A stretch of 16,757 bases of DNA, taken from the NCBI GenBank assembly GCA_000388065.2, contig KB932207.1; one strand, 5' to 3'. This DNA comes from Fonticula alba ATCC 38817 (taxonomy: Eukaryota; Protista; Nucleariida). Under the pieces are notes generated by a model that made no database searches, was not told the DNA's origin, and saw only the letters and a list, made by a program, of their open reading frames with translations. A program made the translations under genes and the position numbers. Positions 1,882-14,008 of this stretch are shown here, piece by piece (the first letter of the stretch is position 1; the number at the start of each line of letters is the position of its first letter).

Positions 1882-2495
1882 ATGAACCAAGCCGGCACCG
1901 CGACCGTTGTCCCTCTCTCCTCCATGCAGCAGCCCAACCCGTCCGTCGGCGGCGGGGCAGGCACCAGCACCGCCCCCGGGGTCTTCCAAGCCGGCCAGGG
2001 ATTGCTCCTCTCGCCGATGCAGATCCTCGGCTTCCCTTCATCCTCCTCCGGCGACCAGTCATCCATGGGCTTGCTGTCGACCGGCACCAGCGGTCAGCTA
2101 CTGTCCTCGCAGGACATGTCCTCGGCCAATATCGGCTCTTCGCAGCAGCAGCAGCAGCAGCAGCAACAGCAACAGCAGCAGCTCCAGCAGCTCCAGCAAC
2201 TCCAGCAACTCCAGCAGGTCCTGCAGCTTCAGCAATCCGGCCAGCAGCAGTCACCATCGCAGCAGCAGCAGCAGCAGCAGCAGCAGTCGCTCCTGCTCCT
2301 GCAGCAGCTCCAGCAGCAGCAGCTCCAGCAGCAGCAGCTCCAGCAGCAGCAGCTCCAACAGCAGCAGCTCCAGCAGCAACAGGCCCAACAGCTCCAGCAG
2401 CAGCAGCAGGCCCAGCAGCAGCAGGCCCAGCTTCGCCAGCAGTTCCAACAGCAGCAGCAGCTCGTTCAGCAGAACCTCCTCCTCCAACAACAGCA

Positions 2496-2530
<35 letters not shown>

Positions 2531-5500
2531 TCCAGCAGCCTGGCGGCTCTCTCTCAAGTGCCCAAATCCTTTCCCTGCTGACTAATTCCGGGTCGTCCGG
2601 GACTGGCGACATCTCCTCCCTGCAAATCAGTCGCCTCCAGGCTCAGCTCCAGCAGCTCCAGCAGCAGCAGGCCACTCAGCAGGCCCAGGCCCAAAGCAAG
2701 CAGAGCCAGCAGCAGCTTCTCCAGCAGCAGCTTCTCCAGCAGCAGCAGCAGCTCCAGCAGCAGCAGCAACAACAAATTCAGCAGCAGCAGCAGCAGCAAC
2801 AGCAGCAGGCCCAGCAGCAGCAGCAGCAGCAGCAGAAGAACCAGCTGTTCATCGAGACGCTCCTGCATAAGCAGCCGTCCGGCACCGGAGTCCAGGCCTC
2901 CTCCTCATCCTCCTTGCCGATCGACCTCCATGGCGGTGTTTCTCCAGCACGCGGGCCTTCCTCCTCCTCTTCCTCCTCGTTGGCCGCTTCACTGGGACTC
3001 ATCCAGCAGAATCTGATTTCCAACAACGCCGGAGGCAATGGGGCCCTTCTGTCGCAGCAAATCCAGCAGATCATTGCCTCGCTTGAGGACGGCGGCACCG
3101 GTGCCGGTGATGCTGGCGCCGCGACTGGCGCATCCAACGCCGCGCTCATTTCATCCGTGCTGAATTCCACTGCCACCGCTGGCATTTCCACCGGCCCGAC
3201 TCCCGGCGGCACGGCAACCGCCTCTACCACAGGTGGCAGCAGTGCCGGCGGAGCGTCCGAAGGCCCGGCATCGGCCATTTCCTCCCCCTCCTCGACGGCC
3301 GCCGGTCCAGCTGGCAGCCCCTTCCCAGCTGGCGGCATGAAGTCCGATCAGGGAGGTGCCCCAGGGGGGGGCTCGAGCCTTCCCCTGGGCGGCGGTGCCA
3401 GCCCCGGCCCCGGCAGCGCCCTTCTGTCGGACATGCTCTCTCGGCCGGCGGATGCTGCTTCCAAGTCGACGACCGCTAGCGCCGCGGCCGCGGCCACCAC
3501 CACCACACTGCCGTCCCCGGCCACGCTGCCGTCCCCCGCCCCGGGGTCCTCCTCCACCACCACCACCACCACCACTCCTGGTCCCTCGGCCACCGGGCAG
3601 CAGGACACCTTCCTGTCAGCCGGGGGATCTGCCGCGTCGGCCAACGATGTGGCGGCCTTCCTGGCGTCCATGGCCTCCTCCAATCGGATCAAGTCCTCGG
3701 TGTCGGCGGCCCCCACGACGGATCCCCTGCCGGCGGATGGCGCCGTGGTCATGGTTTCCTCCTCGCAGCAGCAGGCCCAGCAGCAGCAACAGCAGCAGCA
3801 GCAGCAGCAACAACACATCAGCAGCCAGCCCTCCTCCTCCTCCTCCTCCTCCTCCTCCTCCGCCGCCGCCGCCCCCGCCTCTTCCCAGGTCCAGCAGGCC
3901 GGTGCGTCGCCTCAGCCGCAGGGCACCGCCTCTCGCCCGGCGTCGGGCATTAGCCCGGACCTGCTGGCTTCACTTCTCCAGCAGCAGGTGGCGCAGCAGC
4001 AAGCCCAGCAACAGGCGCAGCAGCAGGCGCAGCAGCCCCTGGTCGCCGGGATGGCGTCCACCTCATCCTCCTCATCGATGCTGCCGCCGCAACTTCTCCA
4101 GGCCATGGGCCGGTCAGCTCTCCTGCCGACCTTCAACGCCCCGGATATCGGCACCACCTCCTCCATGGTCAACCGCGCGGGAGCCAGTTCCGATCTGTTG
4201 CCCGCCCCGGCCAGCCCCCTGCTCCTGGGCGTCTCCTCGTCAGATGTCGGGCTCGGTGGCGGTGGCCTTGCCCCGCCGCCGGTCCAGCTGCCCACTTCGG
4301 CCTCCCCCTCGACTCTGTCCTTGCGCTCGATCCCCCTGCTGTCGTCGAGCATCGGTACTGGTGGCACCGGCGCCGGGGGCCATCACCTGGACCTGGCCCA
4401 GCAGCTGCAGCAATCCGGCGCTGGGCTTCTGTCGGAGAGCCCCTCCCTTGGCCCCGGCGGCCTTCTCCCTGGGGCATCCAGCCTGGGTCTCCTGCCCGGG
4501 TCTGTGATGGCCGGCTCCGGCCCTGGTGGCATGCTATCCTCCTCGACCTCGCTTGCGGGGCAGCTCGACCCGGCGACCCTCCTCTCGCTGCATCGGCAGA
4601 TCAGTGCCACCGGCGGTGTTTCCTCTTCCCTTGTCTCCAACCCCTCTTCACACATGGCCGGTGGTGCGCTGCTCTTTCCCCGTCTCCCTGGTTTTTCTTT
4701 CTCCTCCTTCTTTCCTTTTCTCCCCTGCTGACAATCTGCCTCCCCGCCCCCGGCCCCCCGCCCCCTCTGGTCGCCTCTTTCTCCGCATCCCCCTTTCGCC
4801 TCCATCATCATCCACACGCACACAGTCCTCTCCTCCGCCGGCTCCAGCAACTGCTCTTCCAGTGCATCGTCCCCCTCGCCTGTTCCCTTCCTGTCGATGG
4901 TCGGAGACAATGTCCCGGGGCTCCACATGAAGGCCGACTCCGTGGCTGATTCTTCCTCATCGCCGCAGATGGTTGCCAGTGCGCTGAAGCTCATCGGCCT
5001 GGATCCGGCTGCCGCGGCGACTGCCGGCCCGAATGGGCTTCTCTCCGGCACGACCACCCCCATGCCCGGGTCTCCGACGGCCGGCGGGCCCCTGGTGCTT
5101 TCGTCCCCCGGCGGCGCCAGTGCGCCTGGTGTCGGTGGTGGCAGCGTCTCCGGCAGCACCGGCGACGGGGTGCCCTCCAATGCCGGCGGTGCCGCCACCG
5201 GCAGCAGCGGCAAGTCCAAGTTCGGCGACAATTCCGCCTTCCCTGGGGCCCTGCTGGCGGACCCGAAATCGCCAGCAGCCCAGGCCATCGCCGCTGGGGC
5301 CACGCTGGTCCCCCTGCCGCTGACGCACGCCCATGCCTTGGCCACCCCGGGCACCCGCAAGCTCACTTACCTGTGCACGCATCCGGACTGCCGGCATCGG
5401 GCCCCGTTCAAGCGCTTCCAGCACCTGAAGCGCCACCGGCTGACGCACTCCGGCGAGCGGCCCTTCGCCTGCGAGGAGCGCGGCTGCACCAAGACCTTCG

Positions 5501-6003
5501 CGCGCCTGGACAACTTGACACAGCACCAGCGGACACACGGTCGGCATGCGGCGGCGGCGGCCGCCGCCGCGGCCGAGGCCGCCGCCGCCGCCGCTGCTGC
5601 CACCAACTGCCCGCTGTCATCCGAGCTGCAAAGCCATCACATCCATGCGGCGGCCCTGGCTGTTGGGCATCACCACATGCATGGCGGCGGCAGCATGCAC
5701 CCCCACCACCACCATCACCACTCGGACCAGCTGTCGTCTTCGTACTCGCCCTCGGGCTCGCCCTCGCCCGGGCTCAATGGCGGCAGCGGCGCCGGCGCCG
5801 GCGGCAATGGCAACGGCGGTGCTCTGGGAAGTGGGTCGTCGGCCAACAAGCGCCCCCGGCCGGCCGGCGGCTTGGCTGACAGTCCCTCCTCCGGTGGCAA
5901 TGATGCCAATAGCATGGCCAAGAAGATCAAGCGTGCGGCCCTGGCGGCTGCCGCGATGGCCGCGGGTTACTCTCCCTCTGAGGCGCGTCACTTTGAGGGA
6001 TGA
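1882..6003 (+). CDS. PolyQ/low-complexity C2H2 zinc-finger transcription factor (two fingers, Msn2/Seb1/Ste12-like recognition helices); possibly 5'-partial
   Basis: Exons 1882-4663 and 4826-6003. Intron 4664-4825: GTGCGC...cacacAG, pyrimidine-rich, phase 1, junction MAG-V-LSSAG. About 1,319 aa from Met 1882, TGA at 6001-6003. The frame stays open from the gap edge to 1882, with a possible acceptor ttctAG at 1846. Fingers: YLCTHPDCRHRAPFKRFQHLKRHRLTH-SGERPF-ACEERGCTKTFARLDNLTQHQRTH. Confidence 0.85.
2143..2835 (+). repeat. Coding CAG/CAA trinucleotide repeat region (interrupted polyQ); further polyQ at about 3766-3810 and 3982-4035
   Basis: Dense CAG/CAA tracts in frame with ATG 1882. Includes (CTC CAG CAR)x4 at 2182-2217 and a 15-bp LQQQQ unit x5 at 2308-2382. 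Confidence 0.95.
4664..4825 (+). other. Spliceosomal intron of the zinc-finger gene (162 nt)
   Basis: GTGCGC donor (an in-phase alternative GTGGTG sits at 4661), C/T-rich body with an in-frame TGA at 4729-4731, and a cacacAG acceptor. Splicing joins ORF 1882-4731 to ORF 4897-6003. Confidence 0.8.
5368..5538 (+). other. Tandem C2H2 zinc-finger pair
   Basis: C-x4-C...H-x3-H twice, with a TGEKP-type linker (HSGERPF). Confidence 0.95.
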
Positions 6004-6895: not shown

Positions 6896-9800
6896 TCAGG
6901 CAAGGTGCTTCATGATAGACTGGGCCAGGCCACGCAGGCGCGGCTCACCGGCCCGGGCAAAGGCATTCAGCACCTTCAGCAGGACGGTGCGAGCGCGCAT
7001 CTCCTCCCGGACGTCGGTGGCCCGGGCGCCGGTGGCCCCCTGCAGGCCGAGATCCGCCAACACCGACGCCGGGGCTTGGCGCACCGAGATGTCCGCCTCC
7101 AGCATGGAGTCCAAAGTGTACAGAACACGCTGGTAGATGCTCATGTGCTCCGGGGTCATGGTCTTGGGCCCGAACTCCAGCAGAGTGTCGGTGGAGTTGT
7201 CCAGGAAGGAGGACTCCTTGCTGGCCAGCAGCCGAGCCACGGCCGGCGCGCTGGACAGGATGGCCAGCAGCCCGCCAGCGGCCGAGCGCGTGTCCAGCGC
7301 CAGACGCTCCGCATTGGCGACCCCCTCCTCGCGATCGGCCATGGACATGGCCAGGAAGATGCGGAGCTTGTCCACGGAGTTGATGTGCTCCACCAGGGCC
7401 GAGAAGACCTGACCCCGGCGAAGCAGGCCCATGTCCAACGGGCAGTAGGCGCATCAGGCGTCATGTTAGAATGCGATGCTGAAGGCGTGCGGGGAAAAGA
7501 CACAGAGGCAAAAAGCAGACCGCCGGGGTTCCTGTCTTCACCATTCGGCGCACAGGCACACATGCGCACAGGCACACATGCGCACAGGCACACTCACAGA
7601 CACATACTCACACACACACACACACACACACACCCACACACGTATACGCACCGGTGGGTAGTAGCTCAGGTTGCAGAGGAGAGCGCAGGCAGCGAAGCGC
7701 ACACGAGCATTGTCATGGAAGAGCAGCGCCTGGGCATCCTTCAACACGTTCTCCTGGAAGAGGCGCTGCTGGATCCGATCGTCCCCCTTGGACGCAAGGT
7801 TGCCCAGGGTCAGGAGCGACTCGAAGATGGCCAGCGAGTCGTTGCCACCGCCGAAGTTGCCATCACGGTCCTTCGGGTCGGCGAAGGCCTGAATGGTCTC
7901 GGCAGCCTTGCTCAGCAGCGAGTTGACCACCTTGGAGTCGTCCTCCGGCTGGTCATTGCGCAGCAGCCACACCAGCGGCCGGACCAGCATCAGCGACCGC
8001 TCCCCGGGGAAGGCCACCGACGGGTCGAGGGTGGTGCCGATCTTGGCCAGCGCATGCGACGCGATGAAGGAAATGGCGTACGTGATGACGCGCTGACTGC
8101 CCGGCACTTCCAGGCGCAGCATTTGGCTGAAGCTCACCAGCAGCCGGACCGCCCCGCATTGGACCAGATACCCGCGGTGCGCGGGGTCCGTGGCCACCGC
8201 GTGCAGAACCCGAACCGTCAGGCTCAGCAGCGGGAAAAGCATGCCCGAGGACATGGAGCTGCTCTTGCCGGGGTTGAAGGTCGACGCCAGGTGCACCGCC
8301 AGGTTGGTCATCGTGGCCACCAGGCCGGACTCGACCACCTGCGAGACGCGCTTCTTCACATGCTCGCTGCCATCCAGTGGGTGAACCTGGGGGGGCGGGG
8401 AGAGGAGGGAGGGGGGGGGGGAGATTGCCGTTGTCGCCGACAGGGGAAAAAACGAAGCAGGGACGGGTGAGTGAGGCAGCGGGCAGAGGAGATCGAGGGG
8501 GAGAGAGAGAGAGAGATAAAGAGAGGGAGGGAGGAGGGTGTGCCCCTTTTTGAGGCATTCCATTTGCGCGGGTGGGGAGAATGGCCAAAGGGAAGGGAGC
8601 CCGGCCGAGGTCGCGCTTGCCCCTCGGTGTTGGTGGCGGTGCAGGCATGTGCCCGAGCCCCGGGGGGAGGCCCGGGCAAAGGAAGGACACATCAAGACAG
8701 GCGTACCTTGGCAGGGCCCTCGCCGGAGATCTCGCGCAGCTTCATGAACTGCTCCATCTCCTCCGAGCGCCGCGGGGCATAGGTGGAAATGTTGAAGATG
8801 ATGACGGCCACCGCGTATTCCAGGGCATTGGACGCGCCGAAGGGCGAGTCCACCAGCGGCGCGGCAAAGCCGCCGGACTGGTCGCCAGCCGGCGTGGCCT
8901 GCTTCTCCTTAAGCCGGGACAGCTCGCCCTCCAGCAAATCGCGGAAGAGCCGAAGCATGCGCTCACTGCCGGCCAGGCGCTCCTTCACCGGAGGCATGGA
9001 CGACAGGAAGACCAGCGCCTCGATGGCGCCGGCCTGGGCCGTCCGGTCGACCGTGGCCGCCGCGTCGCCCGACGACGATGCCTCCAGCGCATCGACCACC
9101 AAGGTGTCGAGGTCCACGCCGCCGAGGAACTCGCGCCGGTCCTTCGGCACCACGGACACCACCTTGGCCAGGATGATCACGGCACGAAGGACAAAGCTGG
9201 CGCGCAGGGGACGAGACAGGGGTCAGAGGAGGGAGAGAGGCAGAGGGAGGGGGGGGGGAGAGAGAGAGAGAGAGAGCGCGCGCGCGCGCGCGAGGCAGGG
9301 AGAAGGATGAGTCGGAGGGAAGGGGAAAGGGGCCCGGCGAGATGGGGGCCCACAAGCAGGGCGCCCGCACGCACTCGATGTCCGACGAGCGGGACAGGCC
9401 ACGCAGCAATCCGGCCGCTGGACCACCGGCAATGGCCTGGCGAACGGACTTCAGCGACGAGGAGCTCGCCAGCACATCGAGGATGCACAGCTGCAGGGGC
9501 TTCGGCATGTTGCCCACGTCGAAGGAGTACACCATGTTGTCCAGAAGGCCCTGGGAGAAAAGCACCCCGGAAGAGAGCTCCGGGCTGCCGGCGGCCACGC
9601 AGGCCAGCGCCCGCAGAGCCGCATGCTTGGTGGCCAGGTCCTCCACCGAGTCGATCGGATCGCGCAGCAGGTCCGCAAGGACCTGCGCCGTTGGGCAGGA
9701 GGGGATCGGGGCAACGGAGCGGCATCAAGACGAGGCATGGACATGGTGAGTGCCAAGCATGAATGGGGGAGGGCAGGTGACCGGACGGAGAGGCAGCGGG

Positions 9801-11774
9801 GAAGCGCAAGAACAGGGGGCCGAGGAGGGGGGGGGGGGGGGGGGGGGGCAAACACAGCCGGGCTCGAAATGCGCACCGCCTTGACATCGTCAGTCATGAC
9901 CTCCACCGAGGCCAGCTGGCGGAAGAAGTAGGAAACCGAGGACCGAAGCATCGGCAGGGCGGTGACGGCCCCGGCCGGGGCAGCCTCGCCCGGCCGCGTG
10001 CCCAGGCTGGCAAAGCGCAGGAGCAGCGAGAAAACCGGAGTCGCCAGGATGTACTGCACCAGGTTGGCGGCGTACGTCTGGCAAAGAGGATCGTCCGTGA
10101 TGGACGGGGTCACGGCCCGGGCCAGCAGGGTCACCCCCGAAGCCAGGGCCGGCTCACGGGCCGCCAGGCAGGCCCACCGGTGAGCGGCCAAGTCCACCGG
10201 GAAGTCCACGAACACCGGCAGGGCCATGGACCGGGGGCCGGGCTTCCGGCCGCCGGCCGCCTGGCCACCCTCCGAGGTGATGATCCCATCGATCTCGGCC
10301 CCATCGCCCACAAGCAGGCCCAGCCCCTCGACATCGGCCAGGGTCAGCTCGCGCAGGGCGGACACCAGGGCCGGGTAGTCCAAGATGAAGAGCATCTCCA
10401 GCAGGGAAATCAAGTGGATGGGGAAGTCCCGATACAGGGGATCATGCCCGCGCTGCTCGACCAGGCGCTTGCTCAGGTCCCGGTCGGCCAGGATGTCATC
10501 GGACAGGTGGGCCACGCTGTGCGCCAGGACGGCCGACAGGGCCCCCTGTGCGGCCAGGGCGGCCACCGTGTACGTGGTCTCCGGCAGGGAGCCATCCTTG
10601 GGCCCCGTGAAGGACTGGTGCAGGGAAAGCACCGGCAGAAGGCGAGCCGAGGCGAATTTGCGCGCCGGCTCGCTCAGATCCAGCGAGTCGGGGAAGGCCA
10701 GCGCCGGGACCAGGGCCTCGGCCACCAGGCGCCCGGCCACCGGCGACGACTCGGCCACCAGGGCCAACGTCCGGAAGAGGACCGCCGAGCGGTTGGGCGG
10801 GGTCCGCGGCGAGGCGGCCGCCACCACCAGCAGGTTCAGCAGCCGGGGGAGGAAGTCCGGCACAGGGCTCTCAGGGGCCGAGAGCCCGGGCCCAGCCGGC
10901 TTCGGCACCTGTGACACCATCCAGGGAGCAAGCTTGAAGACGGCCGCCGCATCTGGCACAGGGGTCAGGGCAGGTTGTGAGGCCGGGCAAACGTCAGTGG
11001 TCAATCGGCAGCCGGGTGTTGGTCGTAAGGAGGAGGCCGGCAGGCAACGCACCCTTGAAGGCGGCCGACTGGTCGGTGGAGTACATGACCGAGCTCATCA
11101 GCTTGAAGGCCTGGCAGGAGGGGGCCTGGATGCACTTTTTGCGCCGGCAACCGTCGCAACAGGAGCCATCTGCGCGCACGCATCACAGGGAGACGGCATG
11201 TGAGTGGACCAGCCGGGCGGGAGGGGCGGGAAGGGCGGGAGGGGCGGCATGGCGACATGGAGCAGGATCAAACGCACCGAGATCCAGGCTGGAAATATCC
11301 TCAACAATGCCCTTTGTTGGGCAAGAGGGCGAGGGGGCAATGAGGAGGGAGCAGCAGCAACCGCGGAGGGCCGCGTTCCAGGGAGAGTCAGTACATCGGG
11401 CACCGATGGCGGAAAGCACCAAAACCGACAGCAGCGCAGGGGGGGGGGAGACGGCAAGGATCCCGCCCCCCGCCCGGTCAGACTCGCACCATCGAGCGCA
11501 GCGTCTCGGTCAGCATGCGGAAGAGTTCCGGACGCAGGGTCGTGTCGCCCGGGCGCAGGAAGATGCTGGACAGGGCCCCGCGCAGCAGCGTGGACGCGGC
11601 CTCCCACTCCTGGGCATCGATCTTGCCCTGGGCCTGGGTCTTAAGCCAGACCGGGCACCAGGCTCGCAGGGCCGGGCCCTGGGCAATAACACACGGCTGC
11701 GACAGGCAGTACTGACACGCCTGGTCTGCGTGGCCCGCAGGCTGGGCAAGGTTCGGAGAAGCGGCAGAGGACAT
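6896..11774 (-). CDS. UNC45: UNC-45/CRO1/She4 (UCS-domain) myosin chaperone with a degenerate TPR-like N-terminus
   Basis: Eight exons (minus strand): 11774-11490, 11311-11278, 11169-11053, 10952-9877, 9682-9375, 9196-8707, 8386-7652, 7408-6896. Total 3,558 nt = 1,185 aa + TGA; all junctions GT-AG and phase-consistent. UCS hallmarks: KVHPLDGSEHVKKRVSQVVESGLV, RGYLVQCGAVRLL, ASHALAKIGTTLDPSVAFPGERSLMLVRPLVWLL, FESLLTLGNLAS, VRFAACALLCNL, DKLRIFLAMS. The frame is open a short way upstream of Met 11774 (LQQFSSTSS-M), so an extra 5' exon cannot be excluded. Confidence 0.9.
7549..7593. repeat. 16-bp minisatellite (CGCACAGGCACACATG) x2.8, followed by a (CA)n tract to about 7640, in UCS intron 7
   Basis: Units start at 7549, 7565 and 7581 (partial). 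Confidence 0.85.
9249..9292. repeat. Composite G10-(AG)9-(CG)8 repeat in UCS intron 5
   Basis: Read directly. Confidence 0.9.
9827..9848. repeat. G22 homopolymer (C22 on the sense strand) in UCS intron 4
   Basis: Read directly. Confidence 0.9.
11278..11311 (-). other. 34-nt micro-exon (exon 2) of the UCS gene, encoding GIVEDISSLDL + 1 nt
   Basis: caaAG|GGCATTGTTGAGGATATTTCCAGCCTGGATCTCG|GTGCGT. It converts phase 0 to phase 1, which exon 3 needs in order to read open. Confidence 0.75.
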
Positions 11775-12742
11775 GCTACTGGTGCTGCTAAACTGCTGCA
11801 GCGGTGGTGATGGTGGTAGTGGTTTGTGAAGGGGGAGAGTGGGGAGGGGGGGACAGTGGTGTGGATTCTCCGGAGCAAATGGACCAGCACGAGCGCGACG
11901 CAGGGGACGACGACGCGACAGGCAACTAGGAGAGGAAGGAGGGGGGGGGGAGGGGCGGAGAAAGGAGAGGGGGAGGGAAAGTGCACAAGGCCTGTCAGCT
12001 CTCGGGCGGCCGAGAGGGGCCCCACCACGGCGTGAGATGACCTCGTAACCTCCTCGGCCTCGGCGGGTCGTCCCCCACCCATCTTGGTGCCCTGACCACC
12101 GATGCTCCCCCCCCCCCCCTGTTCCCGGCTCATTGGCCGGGGGCGGGAAAGCACTCTCGGGCGGCCGCCGGCGGCCTTTGTCGCGAAGGTTCAGCGTTGG
12201 CCAAGCGGGGCCGCTGACGGATACCCGCCCGGGGCGCCCGAGGGAGGAACACAGCCAGGGGGGATCCACCGGCAGGAGGGAACTAAAAATGGAGAGTAAA
12301 GATATGTGGCATGGAAAGGTGGAGACACATTCCGTACGGCTCACGTGTGGGGAGATTCCCTGGCCGGGCGAAACCCATGAGTGTCCCGTGGTCATTGAGA
12401 GCGCGCGCGTGAGCCCGCCATCGCGCGCCGTTCCCCCCCCGCCGTCCGGCCCCGGGGGCGCCGTCGGTCGCGGCCGCATGGTGTCCGCGCACGGGCACAC
12501 ACACGCGTCGCCCCGCGCCCCGGCCCCGCAAGCGCGCCGCAGTGTTCGTAGAGGCGTCGAGTGGGGCGGTGGCGCATGCGACGCACGTCCCAGGACGGAC
12601 CATCCTCCCCTGGTTCGCCGGGCTTCGGCGCGCGGGTCGCGCCCTCGCAATAAAAAAGACATCTTGCAGATGACGCGTGTCCCCCCCCCCCCCCCGCCTT
12701 GCTTCCCGAGGAGCGGTCTGAACGGGATCTCGAGGCGTGTCC
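11775..12742. promoter_or_regulatory. Divergent (putatively bidirectional) promoter and 5' UTR region between the UCS and DHX33 genes
   Basis: About 970 bp between head-to-head start codons. Contains CACGTG at 12342-12347, a short CG tract near 12400 and an A-rich patch (caataaaaaag, about 12648-12658). No individual element is proven. Confidence 0.55.
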
Positions 12743-14008
12743 ATGGCGCCTGCCCTAGAATTGGCCCCCCCTCGGCCTCCTGGCACCAGGACCTCAGTCA
12801 TATCGTGCGCTTCTTGGCACCCCCCCCCTTCCACCGCCCTCCTCATATCGCCTGTTCCTCCTGCCCCTTCCCCTCCCCCTCGTTAGCTCCTTTCTTTCCT
12901 TCCTTCTTTCCCTCTCTCTCTCTCTCTTCCCGCCCCCCTCTCCTCTCCCTTCCCTCCGCATCCCGGCCCCCTCTTGCCCTGCTGCCACACGACAGCGAGC
13001 CCGAGCGCAAGAGCGCGAAGGAGAAACCAACGCCCATGTCCGAGCGTGAGGAGCTAAAGCGCCCGCTGGCTGACAGTAGTCTCGAGCGCAAGAAGCGCAA
13101 GAAGCTCAAGCTGGCCCGTCTGGCCCGGCAGCTGCAGGATGAGATCGGTGACGTTGTTGCCCCGGCCTCGGCCGATGGTCAGTCCAAGATCGGCCCGGCC
13201 TCCATCAAGCCGGGGCTCACGCTGGATGTGTCGAAGCTGACGACGAAGGAGCTGCGGAAGTTGCAAAAGCTTGCGGCGCGTGCGGATGCCCGTGTCGCCG
13301 CCCGCCAGGCAGCCGCCGGGACTCTGCCAGGCGCGAGCGATGCGACCGATCTCATGCCTGCGGCTCCCCCGGGCGCCGTGGGGAATGTCCCTGCCCCGGC
13401 CCCGGCCCCGGCCCCTGCCCCTGCCTTGGCCCCCGTGGATGCGGCCGGCCCGACAGTCGCCACGCAGGCTGCCGGTCTCGCCTCTGCCCCTCCCGCGGTC
13501 GCCGTGCCGGCCACCGTGCCGGCCATCGTGGCCCCTGCTCGCGATGCTCCCGCCAAAGACCCACAGCCCCTGACCGAGAAGCAGCTCATGCGCCAGAAGC
13601 GCGACAACCTCCGGCGCGAGTCGGCCCTTCTGCCAATCAGCTCCGGTATGTTGCTTGATTCTCTGCCTTCTCCCGCCTGCCCGTTTCTTTCTCTCTCTCT
13701 CTCTCTCCCTCCCTCTCTCCCTCTCTTTCCCCTTCCACTGGTTCAGCTACTGACTCCATCTCCGCTTGCCTTCCCTTTCGGGCCTCTCCACGTCCACTGG
13801 CTGGATGGGCCAGCCGAGAGCATTATTATCGACCAGATCCGTAAGCACCAGGTGGTTGTTCTCGTTGGTGAGACGGGTTCCGGCAAGACCACACGTGCGC
13901 TCCCTGCTCCGGCTCCTTTCCCCCCTCTGCTCGGGCCCCTTTCATTGCCTAACTCAGATGTCATCGATGGCTTTCGCTCGATCCGCCCTTTCGCCTTCCC
14001 TCGGGCCG

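Follow-up and report, generated by a model that had tools for sequence, protein, structure and literature searches.

Fonticula alba is a slime-mould-like amoeba from the lineage that is sister to Fungi, and is their closest outgroup. A stretch of 16,757 nucleotides from contig KB932207.1 of its genome (strain ATCC 38817, assembly GCA_000388065.2; called the window here, with positions counted from its first letter) contains, on the minus strand, a gene for a UCS (UNC-45/She4/Rng3) myosin chaperone. According to reviews, the UCS chaperones of animals and apicomplexans bear a tetratricopeptide repeat (TPR) domain that binds Hsp90 and Hsp70 (PMC9331494). We favour, as a probable reading, that the Fonticula protein is a UCS chaperone whose N-terminus is derived from such a TPR, is eroded and has no clamp for these partners.

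The UCS gene and its exons

The gene occupies window positions 6896-11774 on the minus strand and consists of eight exons, with the ATG at 11774 and the stop codon at 6896-6898. All seven introns have GT-AG ends, and 6/7 start with GTGCG. The reading frame is open through all eight exons, and the spliced translation of 1185 amino acids is letter for letter the NCBI protein H696_04411 of Fonticula alba (P0001 in our collection), labelled in UniRef as UNC-45/Cro1/She4 central domain-containing. An earlier note on this DNA, made from the letters without database searches, had supposed that annotation at the level of open reading frames would miss the gene; the public NCBI model is identical to it, and it is the N-terminus of H696_04411 that is uncharacterised although the gene model is public.

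The same note had taken the product for a UCS myosin chaperone, and the searches bear this out. Exon 7 matched the UNC-45 structures 3now and 4i2w in the PDB (Drosophila and C. elegans) with E 1e-11, and PF11701 (UNC45-central) reached 27.5 bits, above its cut-off of 25, over residues 485-618, which precede the UCS domain. A complete search through 1.84 billion representatives returned 202 relatives at E <=0.001, the best at E 1.9e-17; names are known for part of these, and the named ones are animal UNC-45s or fungal UCS proteins. The searched collections held no close relative of Fonticula, and a word-based homologue search with the UCS region gave 3 distant matches. A six-frame genome search with the UCS exon found this gene as its one match at E <=0.01. 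The best matches were from fungi (Syncephalis, Lobosporangium) and from animals (a cnidarian) with similar E-values; because fungal and animal proteins are mixed at the top, the UCS part is not distinctly fungal, and a fungal look that had been ascribed to it is not evident. Judged from these similarities, the gene at 6896-11774 encodes a UCS chaperone, in which the conserved UCS domain would carry out the folding of myosin.

The N-terminal part is encoded by four exons. Exon 1 (11490-11774) holds codons 1-95 and encodes an N-terminal extension with a first CX2CX4C motif, a candidate TPR1 (residues ~43-76) and a candidate TPR2 helix A (~81-95); AlphaFold2 (AF2) predicts helices at 13-25, 33-49, 54-72 and 81-94 in this exon. 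It is followed by a phase-0 intron at M95/G96 (intron 1, 11312-11489, 178 nt). Exon 2 (11278-11311) is a micro-exon of only 34 nt, encoding GIVEDISSLDL and the first base of D107, and intron 2 (11170-11277, 108 nt) lies in phase 1 in codon 107. Exon 3 (11053-11169, codons 107-146) encodes a Cys-rich insertion with a second CX2CX4C (C111, C114 and C119; in addition C110 and C125), and then a candidate TPR3 helix A and the beginning of helix B (..QSAAFK). Intron 3 (10953-11052, 100 nt) is a phase-1 intron in codon D146 and is absent from the other genes examined. Exon 4 (9877-10952) encodes the end of the candidate TPR3 helix B (DAAAVFKLAP, with P155), a Pro-rich linker (~160-178) and ARM repeats of the central domain, while exons 5-8 (9375-9682, 8707-9196, 7652-8386 and 6896-7408) encode the UNC45-central, neck and UCS domains. 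Introns 1 to 3 all have GT and AG at their ends.

Transcript-derived contigs were taken from four small public sequencing runs, which come from two samples of one study and are labelled “RNA?”, their RNA status being guessed. The joints 10952/11053 and 11169/11278 were found in 4/4 runs and the joint 11310/11489 in 3/4, so that both ends of the micro-exon are present as contig joints; of the downstream introns, 3/4 appeared as joints. The contigs are intron-less, cover exons only and have GT-AG joints, and therefore fit cDNA. One further joint, 7394/11803, occurred in 4/4 runs at a depth of 59-76; with a side of 20 nt and non-canonical AG..GC ends, it is probably a chimera or reflects a short shared word, and we rejected it.

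With these contigs the N-terminal exons 1-4 are confirmed as real. The exon 1-4 model drawn up in the earlier note agrees with them at all three junctions and yields the product H696_04411, so the check on cDNA that it called for came out as expected. Its quoted peptide strings all occur in the minus-strand gene at the place it gave, the AFKD that it saw formed across the exon 3/4 junction results from codon 146, split G/AT in phase 1 to give AFK/D, and the human UNC45B strings it gave are close to those of a real fish UNC45B (P0153: ..IQLKDEGNKHFQ.., ..IYRNRSACYLKK..). An artefact of annotation or assembly, with the true protein beginning downstream in the central domain, could be suspected because a 34-nt exon is unusual and the runs were merely guessed to be RNA; intron-less contigs from two samples that bear all three junctions with GT-AG ends, a frame open across eight exons and an identical, independent public model speak so clearly against it that it is already refuted as far as the data go, and we give it almost no credence.

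A shared micro-exon and the search for a TPR

To compare the introns in the TPR-coding region, annotated proteins of relatives were mapped onto their genomic loci. The 34-nt exon of Fonticula is bounded by introns after codon 95 (phase 0, ..LRSM/GIV..) and within codon 107 (phase 1). In fish UNC45B, introns after codon 74 (phase 0, ..CYLKK/ENY..) and within codon 87 (phase 1) enclose an exon of 37 nt, and a cnidarian UNC45A-like gene has the same arrangement (phase 0 after codon 63, ..CFLKM/GNY..; 37-nt exon; phase 1 in codon 76). The phase-0 intron of these animals lies at the boundary between helices A and B of TPR2, the place it also takes in Fonticula and Polychytrium, and their micro-exon encodes TPR2 helix B. 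Other genes have a single intron of the pair: in Capsaspora it is the phase-0 intron, at the same boundary (Q80/S81), the phase-1 intron being absent, and P0031, a relative with a full TPR, and the chytrid Cladochytrium lack the phase-0 intron and have the phase-1 intron in the homologous Ala codon (codon 26 in Cladochytrium). In Umbelopsis an exon of ~37 nt and the phase-1 intron are probable, a consistent donor and acceptor having been found.

The pair is complete in Polychytrium aggregatum (L007), where the gene's sole two introns, in phase 0 after codon 6 and in phase 1 in codon 18, flank a micro-exon of 34 nt. Its exon 1 has only 18 nt, and the 5' part for TPR1 and TPR2 helix A seems to have been swapped for a short new first exon. 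The micro-exon peptides of Fonticula and the chytrids (GIVEDISSLDL, NWDQAIESLTQ and DLEKTIEELTE) are alike in the spacing of their hydrophobic residues, which stand at positions 2, 6 and 9.

We estimated the chance of such a coincidence by scattering three introns randomly over the first 534 coding bases. A phase-0/phase-1 pair 34 or 37 nt apart arises with a chance of 6.5e-3, and the same pair placed, in addition, 30-50 codons before the TPR3 proline with a chance of 8e-4. In an unsupervised MAFFT alignment of 12 full-length proteins, the N-terminus of Fonticula lined up with the TPR domains, both introns lay at most 4-5 columns from their counterparts, and AAFKDAAAVFKLAP was placed on the TPR3 helix-B segment, proline on proline. 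Sharing of introns by descent is plausible in this gene, because intron 7 of Fonticula (window 7409-7651, phase 0 after codon 1015, ..YYPP/VFS..) coincides exactly with fish and cnidarian introns (L004 and L003); this coincidence sits in the well-aligned UCS domain.

In its position in the protein and in the arrangement of its exons and introns, the N-terminal region of Fonticula thus agrees with the TPR-coding part of unc-45 genes, and we think it very probable that residues ~43-156 descend from an ancestral TPR domain. In the course of events we propose, the region would come from the three-repeat TPR of the ancestral opisthokont UNC-45 and would have diverged beyond recognition by profiles. 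What survives of the TPR-coding exons is their scaffold, namely the TPR2 helix A/B boundary, the 34-nt micro-exon for helix B, the phase-1 intron and TPR3, together with a faint signature of TPR3 helix B just ahead of the linker to the central domain. If so, a conserved micro-exon of 34 or 37 nt can mark the ancestry of a domain once sequence similarity has gone.

Several points weigh against a TPR in this region. The intron argument itself concerns the descent of the locus and not a retained fold or function. Searches of Pfam with single exons, residues 1-175 and residues 36-160 detected no TPR family even at E 10; a match of the N-terminus to HRI2_3H at E 0.1-0.2 was taken as chance. The PDB gave no sequence match at E <=10 for exon 1 or residues 1-175. 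A word-based search with residues 1-175 found only the protein itself and no relative from which a profile could be built. A phmmer search with residues 1-520 against the 172 other collected proteins gave nothing significant. A hidden Markov model (HMM) specific for UNC-45, built from 26 UNC-45 TPR domains among the relatives found, scored the N-terminus at 0.5 bits, and 15/500 shuffled sequences scored as high. The significant profile match expected of an Hsp70/Hsp90-binding TPR of the carboxylate-clamp type, as in UNC-45, Hop and CHIP, was not obtained.

For profile-profile comparison, an alignment of 23 animal TPR domains (A2) and one of fungal UCS N-termini (A1) were prepared. Compared with A2 by hhalign, the N-terminus had a probability of 1.1% and P 0.048, which also counts on the negative side. 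The score was 16.7, reached by 4/300 shuffled sequences, and the Viterbi alignment paired residues 141-155 (SAAFKDAAAVFKLAP) with TPR3 helix B; against A1 only the same 12 residues were aligned, with P 0.16. The HMM and hhalign both selected residues 141-155 against TPR3 helix B, and this is the sole TPR similarity above noise, the excess over chance being marginal. A 98-column “in-register” hhalign alignment, which gives the same register as the earlier note, is a realignment artefact, an extension around a core of 15 columns, and it was not counted as evidence. The long in-register match to TPR1-3 claimed in the earlier note comes down in the same way to a low-confidence extension around one match of 15 residues.

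Structure prediction did not bring out a TPR either. AF2 was run on single sequences, and the mean predicted local distance difference test score (pLDDT) was 57.7 for residues 1-330 and 46.7 for residues 1-175, with low values over residues 1-125, so the predicted packing of helices is not trustworthy. The model has an N-terminal helix (13-25), three pairs of helices (33-49/54-72, 81-94/109-116 and 123-136/140-159) and a Pro-rich coil (~160-178), and in this prediction the helices agree with three TPR hairpins in how many there are and how they follow one another. The predicted TPR2 helix B is short, with the Cys-rich loop right behind it, and the fold may therefore be broken. A fold search with the 1-330 model (VIA-align) returned generic ARM/HEAT alpha-solenoids only, from residue ~120 onward. 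In a language-model atlas, exon 1 had TPR clusters as its nearest neighbours (0.93), below the level of meaningful recognition, and residues 30-165 had generic solenoid neighbours at 0.83; both were kept as leads only.

Pfam, the PDB, the HMM, hhalign and the fold search thus agree that the N-terminus has no TPR profile or structural match, an outcome that the earlier note itself had named as speaking against its proposal and that does so as far as the fold goes. Of its claim of a TPR-derived N-terminus, the part on descent is very probably right, on the ground of the shared micro-exon and intron phases, and the part on a retained TPR fold is a supposition.

Clamp residues, the cysteine cluster and the rest of the window

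In UNC-45 the columns for TPR1 Asn, TPR2 Asn and TPR3 Lys of the clamp are invariant in the 23 animal TPR domains, and the mutation K82E of the TPR3 Lys in C. elegans UNC-45 abolishes the binding of Hsp70 and Hsp90 (PMC3549490). In Fonticula the TPR2 Asn corresponds to M87, counted back from the shared phase-0 intron. The TPR3 Lys falls on C125 (gapless from P155), G113 (hhalign) or D112 (MAFFT), so that none of the three alignments has a Lys there, and the TPR3 Arg faces K129, K117 or R116, depending on the alignment. In TPR1 the Lys is kept as K45 and the Asn is replaced by Q49 (hhalign). The full set of Lys and Asn in TPR1, Asn in TPR2, and Lys and Arg in TPR3 is not present; what is kept is K45 and a Lys or Arg at the position of the TPR3 Arg. 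The earlier view that the first Lys alone has been retained was therefore broadly right. A caution against our preferred reading is that all assignments other than M87 rest on low-confidence alignments.

The partner has kept its side of the interaction. The cytosolic Hsp90 of Fonticula (L010, G000:C1:1088935-1090425) is a single open frame of 768 codons that ends in ..STMEEVD, and the canonical TPR-docking tail MEEVD is thus retained. One may suppose from this tail that the N-terminus is still a working TPR that binds Hsp90 or Hsp70 through a non-canonical clamp, such as the basic run R115-K118 and K45/K129, considering that K45 is aligned to the TPR1 Lys and K129 or K117 to the TPR3 Arg, and that yeast UCS proteins associate with Hsp90 even though they have no TPR (PMC9331494). 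However, the invariant Asn, Asn and Lys of the UNC-45 clamp are kept in no alignment, and TPR2 helix B, itself a part of the groove, is shortened, with an insertion after it, so we regard a working TPR as improbable. To judge from the residues at these positions, canonical docking of Hsp90 has probably been lost, and the N-terminal domain would no longer dock the MEEVD/EEVD tails of Hsp90 and Hsp70 in the canonical way.

The region is also conspicuous for its cysteines. Residues 20-125 contain 9 of the 16 cysteines of the protein (binomial P 2.7e-7 versus the rate in the remainder), and CX2CX4C occurs exactly twice: at residues 20-28 (C20, C23, C28; window 11691-11717, minus strand) in the N-terminal extension encoded by exon 1, and at residues 111-119 (C111, C114, C119; window 11131-11157, minus strand) in the insertion between TPR2 and TPR3 encoded by exon 3. 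The TPR3 proline lies 48 codons past the phase-1 intron in Fonticula, versus 39 in the two animal genes and 40 in Polychytrium, that is, 8-9 extra residues. The two regions around the Cys motifs gave no significant sign of an internal duplication (248/2000 shuffles as high), and no match to a known family was found for the Cys-motif region.

Two Cys motifs in a domain of unfamiliar sequence raise the question of whether the N-terminal ~160 residues are a lineage-specific Cys-rich, possibly zinc-binding, domain unrelated to TPR, in which the micro-exon and its phases either arose by chance or were inherited as an exon scaffold with the coding sequence replaced. This would agree with the strong Cys enrichment, with the failure to find a TPR profile or fold match and with an N-terminal half of the protein that has no detectable sequence relative. 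On the other hand, the coincidence of spacing and phase has a chance of only ~8e-4 to 6.5e-3 and recurs at the homologous place in animals and a chytrid, the sole match above noise lies exactly on TPR3 helix B and at the right distance from the linker, and the helices fit three hairpins in number and order. We consider an unrelated domain unlikely, and return to descent from a TPR as the better account.

For a TPR-derived module, a reasonable guess, and no more than that, is that the cysteines make up a metal site, or else a redox-sensitive cluster, by which the N-terminal helix is stapled to the loop between TPR2 and TPR3. The two CX2CX4C motifs would in that case coordinate zinc or form reversible disulfides and so clamp the degenerate repeats, and a myosin chaperone would be regulated by metal or redox state in place of Hsp90 docking. 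The more ambitious combination, in which a relic TPR was rebuilt as a metal or redox switch and the stepwise loss of the fungal TPR can be read from the micro-exon, seems to us rather doubtful as a whole. In a more reserved form of the mechanism, the N-terminal domain would be kept as a helical module on the ARM-repeat body, joined to it via the Pro-rich linker; the Cys cluster of the N-terminal extension and the 9-residue insertion may stabilise or regulate this module, which would have a structural, self-association or regulatory role while the conserved UCS domain folds myosin.

The remainder of the window contains other features. Upstream of the UCS gene, ~1.26 kb of intergenic sequence (11775-13036) is very GC-rich with long runs of C and G, and it adjoins a divergent DEAH-box helicase-like gene that starts at ~13037 on the plus strand and has several introns; the region 11775-13036 is probably a bidirectional promoter. 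On the other side of the UCS gene, positions 869-1829 are a run of 961 N, either an assembly gap or a withheld stretch. Then follow, on the plus strand, an open frame of 949 residues (1882-4731) composed mostly of poly-Q/Leu-Gln and Ser/Ala low-complexity runs and an open frame with C2H2 zinc-finger motifs (4897-6003; ..HLKRHRLTHSGERPFAC..), and the two frames may belong to one gene or two.

A TPR remnant in early fungi and comparison with known UCS systems

A review from 2022 calls the TPR of fungi “totally absent” and the manner and time of its loss unknown (PMC9331494). We found that 21 UCS proteins of 724-1036 residues start with a segment that matches positions ~60-138 of the UNC-45 TPR HMM. 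Among them are the chytrids Batrachochytrium salamandrivorans (KAJ1332617), Cladochytrium (KAI8803798), Polychytrium (XP_052962614), Rhizophlyctis and Synchytrium, further Polyrhizophydium, Quaeritorhiza, Clydaea and Thoreauomyces, and the mucoromycete Umbelopsis (the set includes the loci L002, L007, L008 and L009 and the proteins P0085, P0115, P0129, P0050, P0022, P0059, P0016, P0062, P0086, P0092 and P0160). The alignment A1 matched the animal TPR alignment with an hhalign probability of 99% and E 9e-18 over 74 columns, which cover TPR2 helix B, TPR3 and the next helix. Used as a profile, A1 also matched consensus TPR proteins, Hop and residues 67-137 of C. elegans UNC-45 (the last with E 5.5e-10). 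Pfam found one full TPR of 34 residues per fungal protein, mostly just below the threshold, which explains its absence from annotation.

There are in-frame stops upstream of the fungal start codons, no TPR1 or TPR2 signal was found in the available 5' flanks of the genes, and the adjacent gene in Cladochytrium stops 333 bases upstream; in some species 5' exons may still lie farther away. A word-based search with a chytrid N-terminus found only itself, and the literature consulted has no mention of a TPR2B-TPR3 remnant in early fungi. As a separate observation, P0003, a UCS protein of 933 amino acids from ENA, begins midway through TPR3 (MRRALSLNPGNQE..), and its gene model probably lacks the true 5' end. 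A missing TPR match in database models is not always real.

The premise that fungal UCS proteins lack the TPR, on which the earlier note had relied, is therefore wrong for early-diverging fungi, which keep TPR2B, TPR3 and the cap. It follows that Fonticula does not simply stand midway from animals to fungi, as had been proposed: early fungi have a truncated and conserved domain, whereas that of Fonticula is full-length and eroded. Taken together, the earlier interpretation is likely to be right on TPR descent and loss of the clamp, and its evolutionary framing needs revision.

The series we propose runs from Holozoa including Capsaspora, with a full TPR, to Fonticula, with a full-length, eroded, clamp-less and Cys-studded relic, to chytrids and Umbelopsis, with a truncated but conserved TPR2B-TPR3-cap, and to Dikarya, described as TPR-less. 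If it is true, TPR loss on the fungal side went in separable steps, namely erosion (Fonticula), 5' truncation (early fungi) and full loss (Dikarya). The comparisons also suggest why the last repeat and its capping helix persist. In C. elegans UNC-45, the helix after TPR3 bears motif-1 (L121) for the self-association into chains (PMC3549490), and the helix at the N-terminus of yeast She4p is similar in that it binds the neck of a neighbouring molecule (PMC3549490, PMC9331494). As the part retained in fungi includes the helix after TPR3, self-association is, by analogy, a plausible reason for its retention. The role of the UCS N-terminus when it does not bind Hsp90 has become a testable question, of interest to workers on chaperone and myosin evolution more than to general readers.

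Compared with animal UNC-45 (C. elegans, PDB 4i2z/4i2w; vertebrate UNC45A/B), the Fonticula protein has the same order of parts, that is, an N-terminal helical module, a linker, the central ARM domain PF11701, the neck and the UCS domain, along with the UCS exon match and common intron positions that include the TPR2-B micro-exon. It differs in that its N-terminus is unrecognised by TPR profiles and has the clamp Asn and Lys replaced, in ~40 extra N-terminal residues and the 9-residue Cys-rich insertion, and in a total length ~230 residues greater. Where a long kinked helix bridges TPR3 and the central domain in animal UNC-45 (PMC3549490), Fonticula has the Pro-rich linker.

With the early fungal UCS proteins, Fonticula shares its place in the holomycotan lineage and a reduced TPR, and with Polychytrium a 34-nt micro-exon with the same phases. 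In Fonticula the domain is full-length and degenerate; the fungi, by contrast, have kept TPR2B, TPR3 and the cap well conserved but no longer possess TPR1 or TPR2 helix A. The She4p, Rng3p and CRO1 of Dikarya resemble the Fonticula protein as single UCS chaperones of their genomes that serve non-muscle myosins and have no canonical Hsp90 clamp, but according to the literature they lack the TPR wholly (PMC3549490, PMC9331494).

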